DNA of 64,000 nt from NCBI RefSeq assembly GCF_963676685.1, contig NC_092350.1, positions 20,274,001-20,338,000 of the forward strand. Reading direction: 5' to 3'. The translations under genes and the position numbers were made by a program. Positions 48,939-56,264 of the stretch are shown in pieces. Each line of letters begins with the position of its first letter. Within the stretch, counting starts at the first letter, position 1. This DNA comes from Mytilus edulis (Eukaryota). The notes under the pieces were generated by a model that saw nothing but the letters and a program-made list of their open reading frames with translations, made no database searches and was not told the origin of the DNA.

Positions 48939-49259
48939 TACCATGTATACAGTAAAAAAAGAATATGAACTCGTGATACACACAGAAACCTTAACAAAAG
49001 AAATGAGCAGTGCCTTTTCCTATCATAAAAAAGTGCCCTGCCCTCCACCCCTTTTGATTTCTAGCTGGAGCACTGTATATATATTGATGTTGTATGGTTG
49101 TATTCATTTAGATTTTTCCCACGTAAGGTGAGTTGCCACTGTCATGATTGTTGGCAGGAGTATAATTAGGGATTGAAGTATGAGCATAAAAGATTTATTT
49201 AAAGTCAGTTATGATACTTACTTAATGATACTTAATGATGTTTTCCAGTACAGGATCCT

Positions 49260-52200
49260 TCACGGTTCCTCTTCACCAGACTCATATAATTGAATATTAT
49301 CTCCATTATTTCTGATGCTGCTTCCGGTTAATTCAGCTCGATAATCAGAATAATAGATTTCTTCGTACTCCCAGTATCTATCTAGCCTATTTTTGAATGA
49401 GTTTATAGATGGCGCTTTAGTTACTTTATCTGGTAACTTGTTCCATAATTTGGCTATTCTTACAGAAAAACTGTTTTTCCTCAGACTTGTTTTGAATCGT
49501 TGGTGGATGATTTTATTACTGTTTACTCTTGTGCTATGTCTATTTTCAGTGCTTGAAATTAATTTAAGGAATGAACTTGTTTCTGGATCGTAATTACCAT
49601 TTAGTATCTTATATGTCTCAATCATGTCCCCTCGGACCCTTCTATATGACAATGTTGGCAGCTTGAGTTTTTTCAGTCTTTCCGGGTAGCTCAATTTATT
49701 GAAACCTGGTATCTGTCGTGTTGCCCTTTTTTGTACATTTTCGATTTTGTCGATGGATTTCTTTTTAAAAGGTGACCATACAGAGCTAGCATAGTCTAAG
49801 TGTGTTCGCACTAATGTTTTGTATAGAGGTATGAAGATTTTTTCGTTTAAGTTTTTAAATGTCCTTCTAATTGCGGCAAAAGTTGAATTAGCTTTATTCA
49901 CTTTTTCGCATATGTGTCTTTCAAAGGTTAGATCTTCATCAATTACTACTCCAATATCTTTCTCTTCTTGACATTTACTTATATCATGACCTAATAGTTT
50001 GTAACTTGTCTTTTCTTCCCTTACCCCTCTACTTATATTTATGTGTTTGCATTTTTCTGGATGGAACTTTAACAGCCATGTATCACTCCATTTCTCGAGA
50101 TTTTTTAGATCATCTTGCAATATAATTTGATCTGTTTTGCTTTCAATAATTCTGAAGATTTTTGTGTCATCCGCGAATAAGTAGGCATCTGATGTCACGC
50201 AATCTGGCAAATCATTTATGTATAGAACAAATAACAGGGGACCTAATACTGAGCCTTGTGGAATTCCTGAGGTTACATCTTTCCACTCTGGTGTTTCCCC
50301 ATTAACTGAAACTCGTTGTTTTCTATACGATAGAAAATCTGTTATCCACTCTAGGAATGGATTAGTTATCCCAAAATTTTCGATTTTCTTAACGAGTCGT
50401 CTATGGGGTACCGTATCAAAGGCTTTCATGAAGTCTGTATATATGCAGTCAATCTCATAACCATTGTCTATAGCTTCTGTCCATTTATCTATTACCTCTA
50501 ATAGTTGTAGTGATGTCGATCTCCCAGAGATAAATCCGTATTGTTTGTTTGAAAATAGTTTATTTTCTTTCATGTAATTAATTATATGTTCTCTTATTAT
50601 TTTCTCCATTATTTTACAGACGACTGATGTGAGACTTACTGGTCTATAATTTTTAGCTTGTGATTTATTCCCTTTTTTGAATATTGCACTCACTAGGGCG
50701 CTTTTCCAATCCTTTGGAACTACTTTTTGTGTTAAAGATTGGCTAAAAATGATGCCAAGTGGTTCAGCTATACCTTCTTTGACTTCAAACAGCAGTCTTG
50801 GGTGTAAATTATCAGGGCCGGGTGATTTATCCGTTTTTATTTTTTGTAGGTGTTTCAAAACCAATTCAGTGCCAATATTTAATTCCTCTATTTTTTTGTC
50901 TAATGGAATGTGCTTAGGCTCTGGAATATTGCCTTGTGGTTCATTAGTGAATACGCTTGTAAAATATTCTGATAGTATCTCGGCCTTTTGTTTATTGTCA
51001 TCTGTTTTTTCGGATTTTACATCTTCTGTATCTACATGAAGGTCCCCTATACCTTCCCTGGTCTTTGATTTAGATTTTATGTAGCTCCATATAGCCTTTG
51101 GGTTTCTTTTGGCATTTTCAGATAATCCTTTTTCGAATAATTTCTTTTGTTTATTGACTGATGTTTTGGCCTGGTTTCTGACTTTATTGTATTCAGCTCT
51201 TGTTTCAGGATCTTGTTTAGTTATAATTTTTTTGGATAGAATATTTTTCCTTCTAATTAACTCCCTCGTCTTTTTATCTATGGGGAATACATTTCTCTTT
51301 TTTCCTATTTGTGTCATAGTTTTTGTTGGTACAAATCTGCTCTCTAATTCTTTTAAAATGGTTAAAAAATAATTCCAATTTTTATCAATGGAATTTTCAG
51401 CATTAAGCTTATTATGCCAGTCTATTTTATTCAGCTCTTGAATAAATTCTTTGTAATTTCCATGGTTGTACAGATTAGCTATTTTCGGTGCTCTTTTTAT
51501 ATTTACATAACAGTTAAAATCAAAGGATAGGACGCAGTGGTCACTTTTTCCAAGCGGGCTCATATATTCTAGGTTTGAAATCATCTCTTCTTCATTTGTG
51601 ATTAGTAAGTCAAGTGTATGGGGTGTGTCAGCTCCTCTCCATCTTGTTGGTTTTGTTGTGTGTTGGTACAGAAAATTATCTTGTAGTGCTTCCAGAAATT
51701 TATTTTCAGTGCTGTTTGGTCTATCCCCCTTTGTGTTCCATGTTTCCCAGTTTATTTCAGGATAATTAAAATCTCCCATGATGAGTATGTGTGAGTACCC
51801 CATATCTGTTGCCTCTGACATTAGGTCTACTAGCTTATCATTGTATTCCTTGGAACTGTTGGATGGGGTTCTATATATCAGACCCACAAGGAGTTTGTCA
51901 TTTTGATTAAGTTTTACTTTTATAAATAAATTTTCCTGAAACTCTGTCTTCATTGTAATTTCTGTAGCTTCTAGATTGGAGTCTACATACATTAAAAGGC
52001 CTCGTCCTTCATCTGACTTTATGTTTTTCTCAAACATTTTGTAATTTCCTACCTCTGGTATTGAATATTCCGCTGTTGATGGTTTATATCTATTAGCTTT
52101 CGGTTTTACTTCTGTTATCCCAATGATATTTGGTTTGTTGTCTCTTGTACGAACGATCAATTCTGACATTTTGTTGAATAGCTGATCTGCATTTGTATAA

Positions 52201-52334
52201 AAACAGTTCAATTTTGGTAGAACTGTAAAGTTATTTACATTGCCGTTAAAAACCTTTCCCTTCTTTTGTACATTTATAAGTACATTTTTTGTGTCTCTTT
52301 TCACCTTTTTATTTTTACTACTTTCCTCGCCCAT
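49260..52334 (-). CDS. LINE ORF2: APE endonuclease plus reverse transcriptase (CR1 clade), 1024 aa
   Basis: APE motifs CFYTNA, GITE, IYRTP, MGDFNYP, LDL and SDH; RT motifs KSPGPD, NYRPVSLTS, DFMKAFDTV, GIPQGSVLGP and LFADDTK; CR1-type C-terminus (ENVQKRAT, RRVRGDMI, WNKLP, FKNRLD). No stops. Confidence 0.96.
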   Translation of the reverse strand: MGEESSKNKKVKRDTKNVLINVQKKGKVFNGNVNNFTVLPKLNCFYTNADQLFNKMSELIVRTRDNKPNIIGITEVKPKANRYKPSTAEYSIPEVGNYKMFEKNIKSDEGRGLLMYVDSNLEATEITMKTEFQENLFIKVKLNQNDKLLVGLIYRTPSNSSKEYNDKLVDLMSEATDMGYSHILIMGDFNYPEINWETWNTKGDRPNSTENKFLEALQDNFLYQHTTKPTRWRGADTPHTLDLLITNEEEMISNLEYMSPLGKSDHCVLSFDFNCYVNIKRAPKIANLYNHGNYKEFIQELNKIDWHNKLNAENSIDKNWNYFLTILKELESRFVPTKTMTQIGKKRNVFPIDKKTRELIRRKNILSKKIITKQDPETRAEYNKVRNQAKTSVNKQKKLFEKGLSENAKRNPKAIWSYIKSKSKTREGIGDLHVDTEDVKSEKTDDNKQKAEILSEYFTSVFTNEPQGNIPEPKHIPLDKKIEELNIGTELVLKHLQKIKTDKSPGPDNLHPRLLFEVKEGIAEPLGIIFSQSLTQKVVPKDWKSALVSAIFKKGNKSQAKNYRPVSLTSVVCKIMEKIIREHIINYMKENKLFSNKQYGFISGRSTSLQLLEVIDKWTEAIDNGYEIDCIYTDFMKAFDTVPHRRLVKKIENFGITNPFLEWITDFLSYRKQRVSVNGETPEWKDVTSGIPQGSVLGPLLFVLYINDLPDCVTSDAYLFADDTKIFRIIESKTDQIILQDDLKNLEKWSDTWLLKFHPEKCKHINISRGVREEKTSYKLLGHDISKCQEEKDIGVVIDEDLTFERHICEKVNKANSTFAAIRRTFKNLNEKIFIPLYKTLVRTHLDYASSVWSPFKKKSIDKIENVQKRATRQIPGFNKLSYPERLKKLKLPTLSYRRVRGDMIETYKILNGNYDPETSSFLKLISSTENRHSTRVNSNKIIHQRFKTSLRKNSFSVRIAKLWNKLPDKVTKAPSINSFKNRLDRYWEYEEIYYSDYRAELTGSSIRNNGDNIQLYESGEEEP

Positions 52335-53278
52335 GGCGGTCCTCGTACTTTGAACAGGAAGTCCCCCGAGTTGTTTTCTTGAAGTTTTTTTGCCTCAGCC
52401 CACAGTCTCTTTTCTTCTTCTCTCTCACTTTTAGTAAGGTCATTGCTTACATTTACTTTTTGGTATTTGGGATATGATCTAATATAATGCATGTTTCTAA
52501 ATAGGGTTAGTTTTGAGTCTATGCTCTTCAAATGGACTAATAGAGGTCTGTTTGTTTTTTCTTTATCATATTTCCCTAGTCTTTGTGTTTTTCTGATGTT
52601 TTCAATATCCAATGTTATCTTGGCATCTTTAAAGAGTTGGACTATATTTTCTACATCATGTTCTATTCTTTCTTGTTTATTTTCCGACTCATTTTCTGTT
52701 ATCCCAAATATGATCAGATTATTTTCCCTTGTTTTTCTCTCATTTATTTCCTCTAGTACTGTGGTTACTGTTCCTTGATTTGGTAGCACTCCACCTTCAA
52801 TATCCTCGGATACAACATTAGCTACTGCCCCTCCATTTAATGCTTCTTCTTTAGCTATTTCTCTTACTCTTTCCTCGTCACATTTGTGTTTTATAATCTC
52901 CTGGCTAACTATATCTCTTACTTCTTCTTTATCACATTTCTTTTCTATGGCGATTTCTATGTCATTTATTCTTTGCTCGTAGTTGTCCATGATCTCTCGG
53001 CATCTCTCTTCGATTTTCAGATCAGTAACTATGTGTTCTTCAACTACTTGTCTACATGGGGCGCAGAACCACATTGTGTCTGAGTTACTTAATATTTCAT
53101 ATTCAGTTTTTGATTTATTTAAACACTTTATGCAGAAATGCTCTTTACATCTTTGACATTCAAGGAGTTTAGCGTCTTCATTTTTATATATCTTTTGGCA
53201 TATTTTGCATTCCCATGGGTCTTCCTTTTTTTGATCGCTTGTTGCATTTGAGGTAGATTTATTCCTTCTTGTTGCCAT
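52301..53278 (-). CDS. LINE ORF1: PHD-type zinc finger, coiled coil and RRM-like domain, 325 aa
   Basis: CKIC...CQRCKEHFCIKC...WFCAPC (Cys at the usual His position), charged helical region, RENNLIIFGITE, RLGK...RPLLV and NDLT..ER motifs typical of CR1/L2 ORF1. Confidence 0.92.
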   Translation of the reverse strand: MATRRNKSTSNATSDQKKEDPWECKICQKIYKNEDAKLLECQRCKEHFCIKCLNKSKTEYEILSNSDTMWFCAPCRQVVEEHIVTDLKIEERCREIMDNYEQRINDIEIAIEKKCDKEEVRDIVSQEIIKHKCDEERVREIAKEEALNGGAVANVVSEDIEGGVLPNQGTVTTVLEEINERKTRENNLIIFGITENESENKQERIEHDVENIVQLFKDAKITLDIENIRKTQRLGKYDKEKTNRPLLVHLKSIDSKLTLFRNMHYIRSYPKYQKVNVSNDLTKSEREEEKRLWAEAKKLQENNSGDFLFKVRGPPWARKVVKIKR

Positions 53279-53312
53279 AGCTACTACTATAGTTGATTTA
53301 TTTATTTTTATA

Positions 53313-53974
53313 TAGGGCTTCCCTAAATGAAAATATATTAATTTATTTATTTTATTTCATATAATAGAGCTTCTCTATTATTAAAATAAGAAATGAGTTA
53401 ATATTTTTATCTAGTATTTTAAAATTTAGGGCTTCCCTAAAAATAAAATTTCTCTAGATAATATTATTTATCTTCCTGATATTAGATAGAGCTTCTCTAT
53501 CTATAATTATTTTTTTCTAAGCTTGTTGTCCCTTTATTCTGCTCTTTCCTATGTCCTATATTAGGGCTTCCCTAATAGAATTGATCGTTAAGTTGTAATC
53601 TCCTTTCTATTTATCCGGACGAATAGGGCTTCCCTATTCATCTAAATAATTATGAAGTATGTTAATGTTAGATAGAGCTTCTCTATCTATTCTAGGCCCC
53701 CTATTATTTGTTCTATACTTAGTTATGCTAGCTATCTCTGTATGGTCTTTTATGTTGTTAATTCCTAGAAAAACAGGGCTTCCCTACTTTTCTAATATTT
53801 TATTCAATTTTTTAAATAACTTTTTAATTTATGATCTAATAGGGCTTCCCTATTCTTTTTATTATTTGAGTGATGTTGTTGATTTTCCTCTTTGCTTTAT
53901 AATTAAGGCTTCCTTAATTATATTACGCAGAATAATTCGGATCTAGTATGTTAAACAAGGCTTCCTTATTTAAC
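53313..53974 (-). repeat. Array of 11 stem-loops with invariant G-AAG-C loop and unique spacers; two more at 54877-54899 and 54965-54979
   Basis: Loop centres at 53319, 53371, 53433, 53493, 53568, 53630, 53679, 53780, 53846, 53910 and 53962; stems of 5-13 bp vary in sequence but stay paired. Confidence 0.92.
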
Positions 53975-54015
53975 TGTTTTTCTTGTTTTTATTGTCTATT
54001 TTGCTGGCTATTTAA

Positions 54016-54810
54016 TTAACATCCTTGCTCTGACAGTTCAAGTGCCAAATCTATGAATTTCAGCATCCACAATTCATTTACAGCTCTTATGGGATGTACT
54101 CCGTCCGATGTTAGGTTGAAATTCTTTCTATATTTAACTTTAGTGTCTCTTTTTGTCTTGTTTGAAAGGATAAAATCTTGAGAAATTCTTGGTGTAGAAT
54201 AAAGGCGATTAATCAATTTTAGGTGATCGTTGAAGTAGTCAATCTGTTCGCTTAGTTCTTTGTCTATGTTTGTTGCCAATTGGACTTTTCTGTGACCTTT
54301 GGTGGCTTTATTTACCAGGAGTGACGGATATGTCTTTTTTTTACTATTCACAATTAAGTTAATTGAATCTTTAGGTTTATTGGCCCTTGTGATCGAATAG
54401 TATGGACACTCTATAAAAAGCACTGTGGCAGATGGTTTTGTTGTTATGATTTGTTGTTTGAGATCCCTATATTGTGTTAAAGTTTCTTCTATATTTTGAT
54501 ACGGTGATTTTCTAAACTGGATGGTTTTGTTTATCTTCTGTGTAATTTCACATGTACCTAGCCAGATCAGTATTATTGGGTGATCCAAATCTTTCACCGT
54601 GTCTATGAGTGATTTTATGTGTTTTTTGTTGTCGATCGATCCTCCTCTCTTATACAACACTTTAAATTTTTGTCCAGTTGATTCTGGGATATATTCTTTT
54701 AGGCCCACCCCTTTGCTGTCCGTGAACAAGATAGTGTCTCTTTCCAGGTGTGCTCCCCTAACCCTTTGGTATATCTTTTTCCTCTCTTTAATTATCTTCC
54801 TCACAGACAT
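54016..54810 (-). CDS. Stand-alone SGNH/GDSL esterase-like ORF (ORF0) of the LINE, 264 aa
   Basis: Block I-like ILFTDSKG, block II-like KRGG, block III-like IWLGTCEI and block V SDGVHP, so Ser-Asp-His triad candidates are present. Confidence 0.8.
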   Translation of the reverse strand: MSVRKIIKERKKIYQRVRGAHLERDTILFTDSKGVGLKEYIPESTGQKFKVLYKRGGSIDNKKHIKSLIDTVKDLDHPIILIWLGTCEITQKINKTIQFRKSPYQNIEETLTQYRDLKQQIITTKPSATVLFIECPYYSITRANKPKDSINLIVNSKKKTYPSLLVNKATKGHRKVQLATNIDKELSEQIDYFNDHLKLINRLYSTPRISQDFILSNKTKRDTKVKYRKNFNLTSDGVHPIRAVNELWMLKFIDLALELSEQGC

Positions 54811-56264
54811 ATATATAATGATTGTTACTACGACTGTATATTACTTTAATAGACTATAGCACAAGCGGTGTAAATGAAAAATAGGGCTTCCCTATTTTTT
54901 GTACACAAACAGTATTATTCTAGGCGAACGCAAAAAACGAAGTATATAAATACAAAATATAATGATAGGGCTTCCCTATAATTATATAATTTAAATATCG
55001 GAGCAGAAAAGCGCAAAATACAGAATATAAATGTCAATTAACAATATGAATGTCCGGTTTTTCGGCAACGTGGTTTGACCACCAAATTCTGACGAAAGAT
55101 GATATAATCTACATTTTGGTGTTGGGATGATCAAAATTTTGTGTATATGCTATATAAAGGTTTTGATGATTCGTAAATGATGTTTTTGTTTATGGATGTA
55201 CACTGATTACCAACAATAACCACGGATTTAAATCTGATTTCTCTTAGCTTTTTCTTTCACAACTTCTAACCGGAACCGGAAGCTGTTATACATATATGTA
55301 TAACAATACAACATAATTAAGCTCTGTAGAGCTTTTATCCGACATATAAGCTGTCGTATAAAAGCTGAAGTTCAAATTATGGCATAGTAGCCCACATCTT
55401 ATATTTTTTACACAATTTATATAGTTCTATAAAAGAAAAGCAGAAGTTTTAGAAGCCCACTCCAAATTTTAGGGGCAAATGGGCTAATTTCAAACCTGGA
55501 TATTTAACCATTTGTTAACTGGATTTGATCAAAAGTTGCATATAAAGTGGGGTGAGTTGGTAAGGTAGTTCCCACTTGGATTTTCAAGAGTTTAGGGGGG
55601 GGGGCTATGATGAAAATGTTATCCTGCATTGTCGTTACTCTTTTTTTTGGGGGGGGAGGGGGGGTCCAGCTGGCTTTTAGATTTTTACTCAAAACTCGTC
55701 CTCTATATTTCAATTTCATCCAACCCCCAACCATCAAATGATAGATGAATGAGACTGAGCTCCCTAAAAAAGAGTGGAGCAATTTAAAAAAACAGCCGCG
55801 TTGTTAAAAAAAAGTGGGGCGTTTGGCGTTTTACCAGTGGGGCGAGCTTTATACTTGCTTCCGTTTTTGTCAATTTTTGACTGATTTTCGGGGTTTACAT
55901 GCATGACGTGGATAAAGTGACTATATATTTTATGAAAGTATAAAACTAGTCTAACATCGTCCTAAAAATGTGCATGATTATATTTACCTTTCATTGGACA
56001 AGTACAAAAAAGTTATCCGGATACATTTTTGTTGCGATGACTTTTTTAAATGTATGTTTCGTTCTCCGGTTTCTTCCAGTTAATCGGTAATGTAACCCAT
56101 TTCAGTATATCTGTTTACAATAGCTTTTTGAACCATCTGTTTGAAAAACAAAAGTTCTTTGTATCAACTGTCTGACCATTCAAACATCAGCAGACGAGCG
56201 TCCTTTCGCGTCATACTATACAAAACGACCACGGTGAAAAGATTTCCGGTTTTTCCGTATTAAG

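Follow-up and report, generated by a model that had tools for sequence, protein, structure and literature searches.

Kapitonov and Jurka (2003) are reportedly the source to cite for esterase-type open reading frame 1 (ORF1) proteins of long interspersed nuclear elements (LINEs). Esterase domains within the ORF1 protein (ORF1p) are known in CR1, L2 and RTEX elements (PMC3905857, PMC13343379). In zebrafish ZfL2-1 the esterase is an ORF1p domain fused to a coiled coil and an arginine-rich motif (Schneider et al. 2013, PMC3905857), and the accessible text of the same paper describes the esterase-type ORF1 class as having no defined RNA-binding domains. In their classification of the Jockey/CR1/L2 superfamily, as far as its main text goes, Metcalfe and Casane (2014, PMC4120745) place esterase ORF1s (type IV) in vertebrate subgroups only, and ORF1s combining a PHD finger with a Transposase_22-like part (type IIC) in CR1 subgroup 5 and L2 subgroup 6. 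According to the literature accessible to us, the esterase of type IV stands in for an ORF1p that binds RNA. Outside LINEs, the Vesta long terminal repeat (LTR) retrotransposons and the Athena elements of bdelloid rotifers carry a GDSL esterase as ORF3 (Rodriguez et al. 2017, PMC5408684). Here we analyse a 64,000-nucleotide (nt) stretch of the Mytilus edulis genome (contig NC_092350.1, positions 20,274,001 to 20,338,000; hereafter the window, in whose numbering all positions are given), the minus strand of which carries at 49211..55283 a complete LINE copy of 6073 nt with three open frames: an esterase-like ORF0 (54016..54810), an RNA-binding type of ORF1 (52301..53278) and the endonuclease and reverse transcriptase gene ORF2 (49260..52334). 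The evidence supports one LINE with three cistrons, to which the esterase belongs as a gene of its own.

The limits of the element were given by homology, and its ORFs by the list of open frames. The mussel (Mytilus) genome, 1.37 Gb, was searched (labels in C and L below denote its contigs and the loci fetched from it; the wider survey of the ORF0 family took in 6 further loci beyond those first fetched), and the ORF0 protein as query matched at least 153 places. Homology to three other copies (L031, L032 and L033; 94-99% identity) starts at 55283/55290 and stops at 49208-49219; the boundaries of the original prediction, 49211-55283, coincide with these limits and can be taken as the true ends of the element, because homology to the three copies starts and stops there. 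The four copies are on four chromosomes (C7, C12, C11 and C6), with common 5' and 3' ends and unrelated flanks. All four begin with GCTTCCGGTTCCGG (first bases GCTTCCGG) and finish in the same short repeat tail (...CATCATTAAGTATCATTAAGTAAGTATC, without an A run in 4/4 copies), whose length varies by a few bases between copies. In the window the 3' untranslated region (UTR) has about 49 nt (49211..49259) and ends in a short direct repeat (CATTAAGTA twice) without poly(A). A short tandem repeat in place of poly(A) at the 3' end is typical of CR1/L2 elements. The element is a full-length, evolutionarily young LINE placed in the CR1/L2 group, the CR1 clade itself being only putative. The first bases of the four copies hold a 5'-terminal motif, GCTTCCGGTTCCGGTT (55268..55283), which recurs 327 nt upstream of ORF0 in L034 (L034:4663), a diverged family whose ORF0 protein is only 58% identical to that of the window; it is likely to be a start-site or internal-promoter element.

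The copies also show that ORF0 lies inside the mobile unit. The order ORF0-ORF1-ORF2 is kept in L032 and L033, both with a broken ORF2. L031 (C12:81182500-81192400) has an internal deletion (the window stretch 53405-51553 is absent), and its 5'UTR, ORF0 and nine of the spacer hairpins described below are fused to ORF2, which starts there at residue 262. At four further loci the copy is truncated at its 5' end and begins at element position 118, 425, 745 or 1088; the truncation points 745 and 1088 fall inside ORF0, and all four copies are colinear into the spacer and ORF1. This is the pattern that target-primed reverse transcription from the 3' end of one ORF0-containing RNA would leave. In total, ORF0 sequence is colinear with downstream parts of the element in 8/8 ORF0-holding loci of the window family.

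The three frames are open on the minus strand within the coordinates first given, and the esterase-like gene, with its TDS, GTCE and DGVH motifs, is, as first noted, an intact frame of its own. It encodes 264 amino acids (aa) with S32 (in TDSKG), G56, C87 (in G85-T86-C87-E88) and D236-G-V-H239 as key residues, and its closest database protein, also from Mytilus edulis, is 97% identical. When the window protein was aligned with 18 homologues from the database (29-59% identity; 19 members in all), the motifs (T/S)DSKG, G56, WLGTC87E and D236-G-V-H239 stood out. At least 90% of the members share G56, D236 and H239, the serine motif of block I, DSK(G), is present in all rows covering it except the most distant one (P0030), and C87, which replaces the block III oxyanion asparagine (GxND) of SGNH enzymes, is invariant (19/19). 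The AlphaFold2 model of ORF0 (mean predicted local distance difference test score, pLDDT, 87.4; predicted template modelling score 0.83) has a disordered loop at residues 150-177 and one short N-terminal helix before the fold. Compared with the PDB by Foldseek, it gave 60 matches at E ≤ 0.001 (best E 2.7e-6), and the matches listed were mostly GDSL/SGNH esterases, acylhydrolases, platelet-activating-factor acetylhydrolase and peptidoglycan O-acetyltransferase, together with a few designed scaffolds. In VIA-align the top row was a designed scaffold (Z 17.7, rmsd 2.5 Å over 179 residues), followed by GDSL/SGNH acylhydrolases and esterases at Z 14-16. Structure prediction, which had been proposed as a check, in this way confirmed at the level of a model that ORF0 has the three-layer alpha/beta/alpha SGNH fold of a stand-alone protein. 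Sequence comparison was less telling: the Pfam scan of ORF0 gave no GDSL match above the gathering score, and Lipase_GDSL_2 was touched below the cut-off by 3/19 members (best E 1.1e-4). The single-sequence search of solved structures returned only unrelated weak matches (ribosomal S14, FAM32A). The SGNH relationship is thus seen through the fold search and not through sequence alone. The only Pfam match of the window protein, DUF4729 (E 0.019; 2/19 members), was treated as noise.

Between families, pN of ORF0 (0.26-0.45) is far below pS (0.68-0.81, saturated), and dN/dS is 0.25 (L034 versus L036) and 0.23 (window versus L032) in the two pairs with a usable dS; the pair of window and L033 was excluded, an internal stop there shifting the codon index. 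These substitution patterns, another of the proposed checks, indicate that ORF0 is under purifying selection. A profile search of 1.84 billion representatives gave 1080 relatives at E ≤ 0.001 (519 at 1e-10, 130 at 1e-30). The stand-alone form is the rule in the family, since 145 of the best 150 relatives have at most 301 aa and are matched nearly end to end. The neighbours of ORF0 in the protein atlas are unnamed clusters, mostly from Mollusca and Annelida, and then GDSL clusters. As in ZfL2-1, in the accessible account of that element (PMC3905857), an SGNH-fold esterase lies upstream of the endonuclease and reverse transcriptase gene, the Ser-Asp-His triad and the glycine are kept, and the structural neighbours include platelet-activating-factor acetylhydrolase (Z 15 for ORF0). 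Unlike in ZfL2-1, the mussel esterase lacks a coiled coil and is encoded on its own as 264 aa, 737 nt upstream of an RRM-type ORF1, and the oxyanion asparagine (N195 there) is a cysteine. Positions H191 and S228 of ZfL2-1 are regarded as specific to transposon esterases. By analogy only with what has been proposed for the ZfL2-1 ORF1p esterase, the ORF0 esterase would act on lipids or membranes.

ORF1 (325 aa) comprises a PHD finger (residues 24-75), long helices (73-148) and an RRM-like and CTD-like fold (about 171-325), CTD denoting the carboxy-terminal domain. Pfam recognises the PHD finger (E 4.8e-6), and the Transposase_22 model gives no match in ORF1. Its AlphaFold2 model (28 homologues, pLDDT 83.2) consists of a zinc-finger part, helices, a disordered linker and two alpha/beta units. 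The top 10 Foldseek rows are human LINE-1 ORF1p throughout (2yko_A, E 3.5e-6, 217 columns); 2w7a, an entry with the RRM alone, reaches 1.2e-3, and the PHD fingers of Pygo and MLL match the N-terminus. As far as a predicted model can show, ORF1 joins a PHD finger to a coiled coil, RRM and CTD like those of L1 ORF1p, so that the earlier description of it as PHD plus RRM stands and is made more exact. The mussel ORF1 is of type IIC and not of type IV, and human L1 ORF1p 2yko, its best structural match, is also the template in Table 1 of the classification (PMC4120745); unlike the mussel element, type IIC ORF1s are described in the main text of that paper, additional files aside, without a further upstream gene. 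One gene model from Mytilus galloprovincialis (P0112, 330 aa, labelled 'PHD-type domain-containing protein') is matched by the ORF0 profile as well as by ORF1; in it, parts of the two cistrons were probably fused during annotation. ORF2 (1024 aa) encodes an APE-type endonuclease and a reverse transcriptase (Pfam Exo_endo_phos_2 at residues 150-268, E 8.1e-16; RVT_1 at 555-784, E 3.7e-35) and overlaps the end of ORF1 by 34 nt in another frame (52301-52334).

The region upstream of ORF1 is poor in start codons. From the 5' end of the element to the ORF1 AUG (2005 nt) there are 8 ATG, compared with 26.4 ± 3.7 expected from dinucleotide shuffles (0/1000 as low), which amounts to about 1 per 250 nt before ORF1 versus 2-11 (mostly 3-8) per 250 nt from ORF1 on. 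The 5'UTR (54811..55283, minus strand, 473 nt) has a single ATG, that of a start-stop mini-ORF, versus 8.2 ± 2.1 in the shuffles (0/1000 as low), and the ATGs between the ORF0 and ORF1 starts open 1-17 codons only. The context of the ORF0 AUG is weak (atatatATGt) and that of the ORF1 AUG is strong (gtagctATGg). The same arrangement was found when the start codons of 13 loci from 12 families were compared: a pyrimidine precedes the ORF0 AUG at -3 in 13/13, with a G at +4 in none; for the next AUG the figures are 12/13 with a purine at -3 and 8/13 with a G at +4; and the density of ATG is 0.4-8.5 per kb between the two AUGs versus 18-31 per kb in the following 1.5 kb. In the extreme case, L037, the two start codons are 2562 nt apart with a single ATG in between. 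The proteins follow the same trend. Internal methionines make up 11 of 3824 residues in 15 ORF0s versus 126 of 7306 in the next ORFs, and among the database homologues methionine accounts for 0.50% (ORF0) versus 2.02% (next ORF). Out-of-frame ATGs number 47 in 11 ORF0s, compared with 69.0 expected from synonymous shuffles, all 11 genes being at or below the mean, and 390 in the next ORFs versus 296.5 expected.

Such an AUG pattern, recurring in 12 families, points to leaky scanning, and from these sequences we moderately favour the translation of both ORF0 and ORF1 from the capped full-length RNA by this route. The element would be copied as a single RNA of about 6.1 kb with three cistrons; a minority of the scanning 40S subunits would initiate at the weak ORF0 AUG, and the remaining ones would traverse about 1.5 kb that is nearly AUG-free and initiate at the strong ORF1 AUG. 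The AUG of ORF2 is also in a strong context (gccgccATGg), 31 nt before the ORF1 stop; ORF2 is out of reach for leaky scanning because ORF1 holds 28 ATG, and it would be translated by another route, such as reinitiation. The closest described case is that of rice tungro bacilliform virus (RTBV) and the badnaviruses, in which leaky scanning proceeds through the AUG-free ORFs I and II (Pooggin and Ryabova 2018, PMC5902531); the signature given for RTBV in the accessible text of that review includes a weak first start, 900 nt without an internal AUG and rules on the context at -3/+4. Like RTBV with its ORFs I-III, the mussel elements have a weak first AUG, a long upstream ORF nearly AUG-free over 0.9-2.5 kb and a stronger downstream AUG. 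RTBV and the badnaviruses are plant pararetroviruses in which the mechanism was experimentally tested, whereas the mussel case is an animal LINE, is derived from sequence and retains a few AUGs of short ORFs (PMC5902531).

The spacer between ORF0 and ORF1 (53279..54015, minus strand; 46% A, 2 ATG) measures 737 nt, in agreement with the gap of about 740 nt first reported, and the hairpin motif noticed on both sides of ORF0 is present there 11 times and in the 5'UTR twice. The hairpins were defined by a GAAGC apex (G-AAG-C) and a stem of at least 4 bp. Those of the 5'UTR are at 54965..54979 (ATAGGG-AAG-CCCTAT) and at 54877..54899 (10-bp stem, 66 nt before the ORF0 AUG). Those of the spacer, all on the minus strand as well, are at 53957-53967, 53898-53922, 53838-53854, 53775-53785, 53669-53689, 53621-53639, 53559-53577, 53483-53503, 53425-53441, 53361-53381 and 53313-53325. 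All GAAGC words of the 5'UTR and spacer (13/13) are hairpin apexes, and the rest of the 64 kb has no hairpin of this type on either strand, despite 49 and 33 occurrences of GAAGC on the two strands. The spacer RNA folds at -161 kcal/mol (z -8.66, 20 shuffles), and its minimum free energy structure has all 11 hairpins. Hairpins with the same apex and other stems are found at the same places and in the same orientation in L034 (9), L036 (10) and L035 (7), and GAAGC-apex hairpins are absent from L037-L042. The four hairpin-bearing families form one ORF0 clade (99/98 support), and the sequence between their hairpins has diverged.

When 39 hairpins were aligned, 80% of the cells were paired, versus 67.5% in shuffles and at most 53% with a slid partner, the four innermost pairs being paired through the selection rule (stem of at least 4 bp). 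The covariation score was 0.368 versus 0.176, and 0/500 shuffles reach it; many of the hairpins are paralogous and non-independent, and these shuffle counts should not be read as probabilities. At pair 11-19, 30 hairpins have GC, 8 have AU and none is unpaired; at pair 12-18, 34 have GC and 4 have AU. At the inner pairs 7-9, G-U-type cells outnumber A-C-type ones (10 versus 2), weakly favouring the sense strand. We tentatively propose that the 13 G-AAG-C triloop hairpins are repeated RNA docking sites for ORF1p or for the ORF0 protein (ORF0p), although this is somewhat less probable than not; docking sites placed just upstream of where ORF1p emerges would favour the assembly of the ribonucleoprotein (RNP) in cis. 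The individual hairpins have folding energies of -4.9 to -15.2 kcal/mol. Hairpins of -5 to -15 kcal/mol are, according to the data of Kozak, too weak to halt scanning.

Two raw RNA-seq runs and two sets of contigs were aligned to 49400-55399. In X21 (raw RNA-seq, about 6% of the run) 50 reads fell in 21/30 bins, at depths of 0.5-2.3x for ORF0, 0.65-1.6x for the greater part of the spacer and 0.75-3.6x for ORF1. Over 52200-54999 (ORF1, spacer and ORF0) the first mate was on the plus strand in every read, which in most stranded libraries means RNA of the minus (sense) strand. A contig of 5612 nt from X1, a set tentatively taken to be RNA, spans 49400-54870 with 27 differences, and another, adapter-flanked piece from X1 ends at 55272, 11 nt from the first base of the element. 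The coverage by reads and contigs is compatible with one transcript.

Taking these data together, we consider likely the full explanation of a single RNA of about 6.1 kb with three cistrons, leaky scanning and hairpin docking. Several results weigh against it. At the level of transcription and integration, the RNA depth is very low (0-3.6x, with only 5 reads in X24), a contig across the genes is no proof of one transcript, and target-site duplications were sought at the four copies without a clear one being found, only 4-5-nt coincidences. For the start codons, the spacer alone is not depleted (2 ATG versus 3.0 ± 1.2; 372/1000 shuffles as low), and because its count is not below that of the dinucleotide shuffles, depletion there is inseparable from a TG-poor composition; the synonymous-shuffle test is not significant for the window ORF0 alone (98/300), nor mostly for other single genes. 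For the hairpins, besides the two limits on the stem alignment given above, the strand is not settled: over all ten pairs there are 13 G-U-type versus 14 A-C-type cells, and the sense strand is more stable in just 21/39 hairpins, with 6 ties. For the esterase, hydrolase activity is uncertain because the oxyanion asparagine is replaced by cysteine. The family-profile search of solved structures gave 4 unrelated matches and no SGNH protein, with no match to the ZfL2-1 esterase (4c1b) at E ≤ 10, and 4c1b is absent among the Foldseek and VIA-align rows listed; this absence was not taken to mean a different origin, because the 4c1b crystal, in the accessible account, is a domain-swapped dimer (PMC3905857).

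The same AUG and hairpin data bear on an alternative with two transcription units, which we regard as improbable. Here a full-length RNA would serve for ORF0 and as template for transposition, and the hairpin spacer would be an internal promoter for a shorter ORF1-ORF2 mRNA, its hairpin palindromes being protein-binding DNA sites and the spacer a monomer-like repeat array. The 11 similar palindromic units, spaced by 49-101 nt directly upstream of ORF1, are what such a promoter might look like; repeated 5' subunit arrays are known in some vertebrate CR1-group elements (PMC13343379, in its accessible part), the unsettled strand of the hairpins suits a DNA site, and the RNA depth on ORF1 (2.4-3.6x) is slightly above that on ORF0 (0.5-2.3x). 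Yet a separate ORF1 mRNA needs neither an AUG-poor, methionine-poor ORF0, which is seen in 12 families, nor the weak ORF0 AUG seen in 13/13 loci, and the AUG pattern is kept where the spacers are short (110-286 nt) and hairpin-free (L040, L044, L045 and L047). Compensatory stem changes with a fixed apex fit a folded strand better than a DNA site read by its sequence, and the reads also cover the spacer and ORF0, as the single three-cistron RNA would have it.

A second alternative, unlikely to a similar degree, concerns the function of ORF0 and is compatible with the three-cistron reading: ORF0 would be a non-catalytic, SGNH-like module binding RNA or protein and itself docking on the hairpins. 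A model for it is Oskar, the OSK domain of which PMC3905857 mentions as an SGNH protein without catalytic function. The invariant cysteine in place of the oxyanion asparagine in 19/19 members agrees with such a role, as do the missing Pfam GDSL match, with Lipase_GDSL_2 below the cut-off in 3/19 members, and the presence of hairpins on both flanks of ORF0. However, at least 90% of the members have D236 and H239, the serine motif of block I is missing only from P0030 among the rows covering it, the model superposes on active esterases at Z 14-16, and far relatives without GAAGC hairpins (L040-L048) retain the same motifs.

The gene order of the window element is kept in families at 35-58% ORF0 identity. 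ORF0-ORF1-ORF2 recurs in L034 (58/60/71% aa identity) and L036; in L040, L044, L045 and L046, ORF0 is followed by an ORF of 518-895 aa (with a weak PHD/RING match in 3/4) and by an endonuclease or reverse transcriptase ORF, and in L037 and L048 by a PHD ORF. L047 (C10:7218500-7224499) has an ORF0-like esterase, a gap of 278 nt and an endonuclease and reverse transcriptase ORF of 1158 aa, without ORF1. L037 (C3:49265000-49274900, minus strand) has a 1746-nt spacer between its ORF0-like gene and a PHD ORF of 931 aa, and this spacer contains 21 hairpins of another kind, with an AGCAAG/CTTGCT stem and a 7-nt loop (GATAAAG, GTAAAAG or GTAATAG). Solo ORF0-like remnants are found at L038, L039, L041 and L043. 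An ORF0 relative also lies between the 5' LTR and gag of a gypsy-type LTR retrotransposon (gag, reverse transcriptase, RNase H, integrase) at 3 loci, and the same LTR family occurs without the 915-nt ORF0-holding piece at 6-7 loci. The gene is a 245-aa ORF0-like esterase (L042:3848-6000, C13:52822847-52824999), the LTR portion recurs 8.0-9.5 kb downstream, and at a second locus (L049) homology ends right after ORF0. In the sequence tree the LTR-borne ORF0 nests within the LINE-borne ones, indicating the capture of an ORF0 relative by an LTR retrotransposon.

The linkage of ORF0 to the LINE that the original prediction had drawn is therefore only partly exclusive: it holds at 8/8 loci of the family and in many other families, and does not extend to the relatives in the LTR retrotransposon or to the solo remnants. 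These relatives mark ORF0 as a portable retroelement module and not as a gene independent of this LINE. That ORF0 is a host gene, or another element's remnant, standing by chance beside an ordinary two-ORF LINE has practically no probability left and is already refuted for the window family by the common ends and the truncations: solo frames without a downstream ORF and the LTR-borne relative are what it would have in its favour, but both ends are common to four copies, 5' truncations break within ORF0, gene order is conserved across families and the 5'-terminal motif is common to two of them.

Like ORF3 of the bdelloid elements, ORF0 is a stand-alone GDSL/SGNH accessory gene shared between classes of retroelements. 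The bdelloid esterase lies downstream of pol and has the canonical S-G-N-H residues, whereas the mussel one is the first gene, before ORF1 or gag, and has Cys instead of Asn; the accessible text of PMC5408684 mentions neither leaky-scanning signatures nor hairpin arrays in the bdelloid elements. Our literature search, which left Repbase and Dfam entries and supplements outside, so that a prior description is possible, found no three-ORF LINE with a separate esterase and, in the parts of the papers accessible to it, no report of leaky scanning in LINEs. Within the same scope it did not find a separate first-cistron esterase combined with an RRM-type ORF1, the Asn-to-Cys change, an ORF0 that is poor in AUG and methionine and has a weak start, the hairpin arrays or the capture by an LTR element.

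A joint reading of the mussel elements, which we hold only as a possibility, is that of a large, old lophotrochozoan 'ORF0-first' lineage of retroelements with leaky scanning, spacer hairpin arrays acquired at least twice independently and a portable ORF0 cassette. If it is true, little esterase and much ORF1p would be made from one capped RNA by means of a weak start, an esterase gene nearly free of AUG and methionine, an AUG-free spacer and a strong ORF1 or gag start, and leaky scanning would be a translation strategy not described for LINEs. The hairpin arrays (the G-AAG-C triloops and the stems with 7-nt loops of L037) would be multivalent docking sites nucleating the RNP in cis, and the ORF0 cassette would have moved between LINEs and a gypsy-type LTR retrotransposon. 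Because genes for a separate esterase and an L1-like ORF1p coexist in a mollusc, the esterase and RNA-binding functions appear complementary and not alternative. The element addresses two questions, how several proteins are expressed from one LINE RNA and what the LINE esterase does: the weak ORF0 AUG, the AUG- and methionine-poor ORF0 and the strong next AUG, a signature seen genome-wide, give a concrete hypothesis for tricistronic expression, the co-varying hairpin arrays a defined RNA element with which cis-preference and the assembly of LINE RNPs can be studied, and the LTR element with and without ORF0 a natural experiment on what the module contributes.

Some minor observations complete the description. 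The N-terminus of the endonuclease and reverse transcriptase ORF of L047 (MKYTLLLFLASSLALHIINA...) resembles a signal peptide. The 5'-terminal motif GCTTCCGGTTCCGGTT holds two CCGGAA-type cores on the opposite strand, which we take to be ETS-like. Just outside the 5' end of the element there is a perfect palindrome of 22 nt (55284-55305), followed by a second one with 15-nt arms (55330-55344 and 55352-55366); neither is present in the flanks of the other copies.

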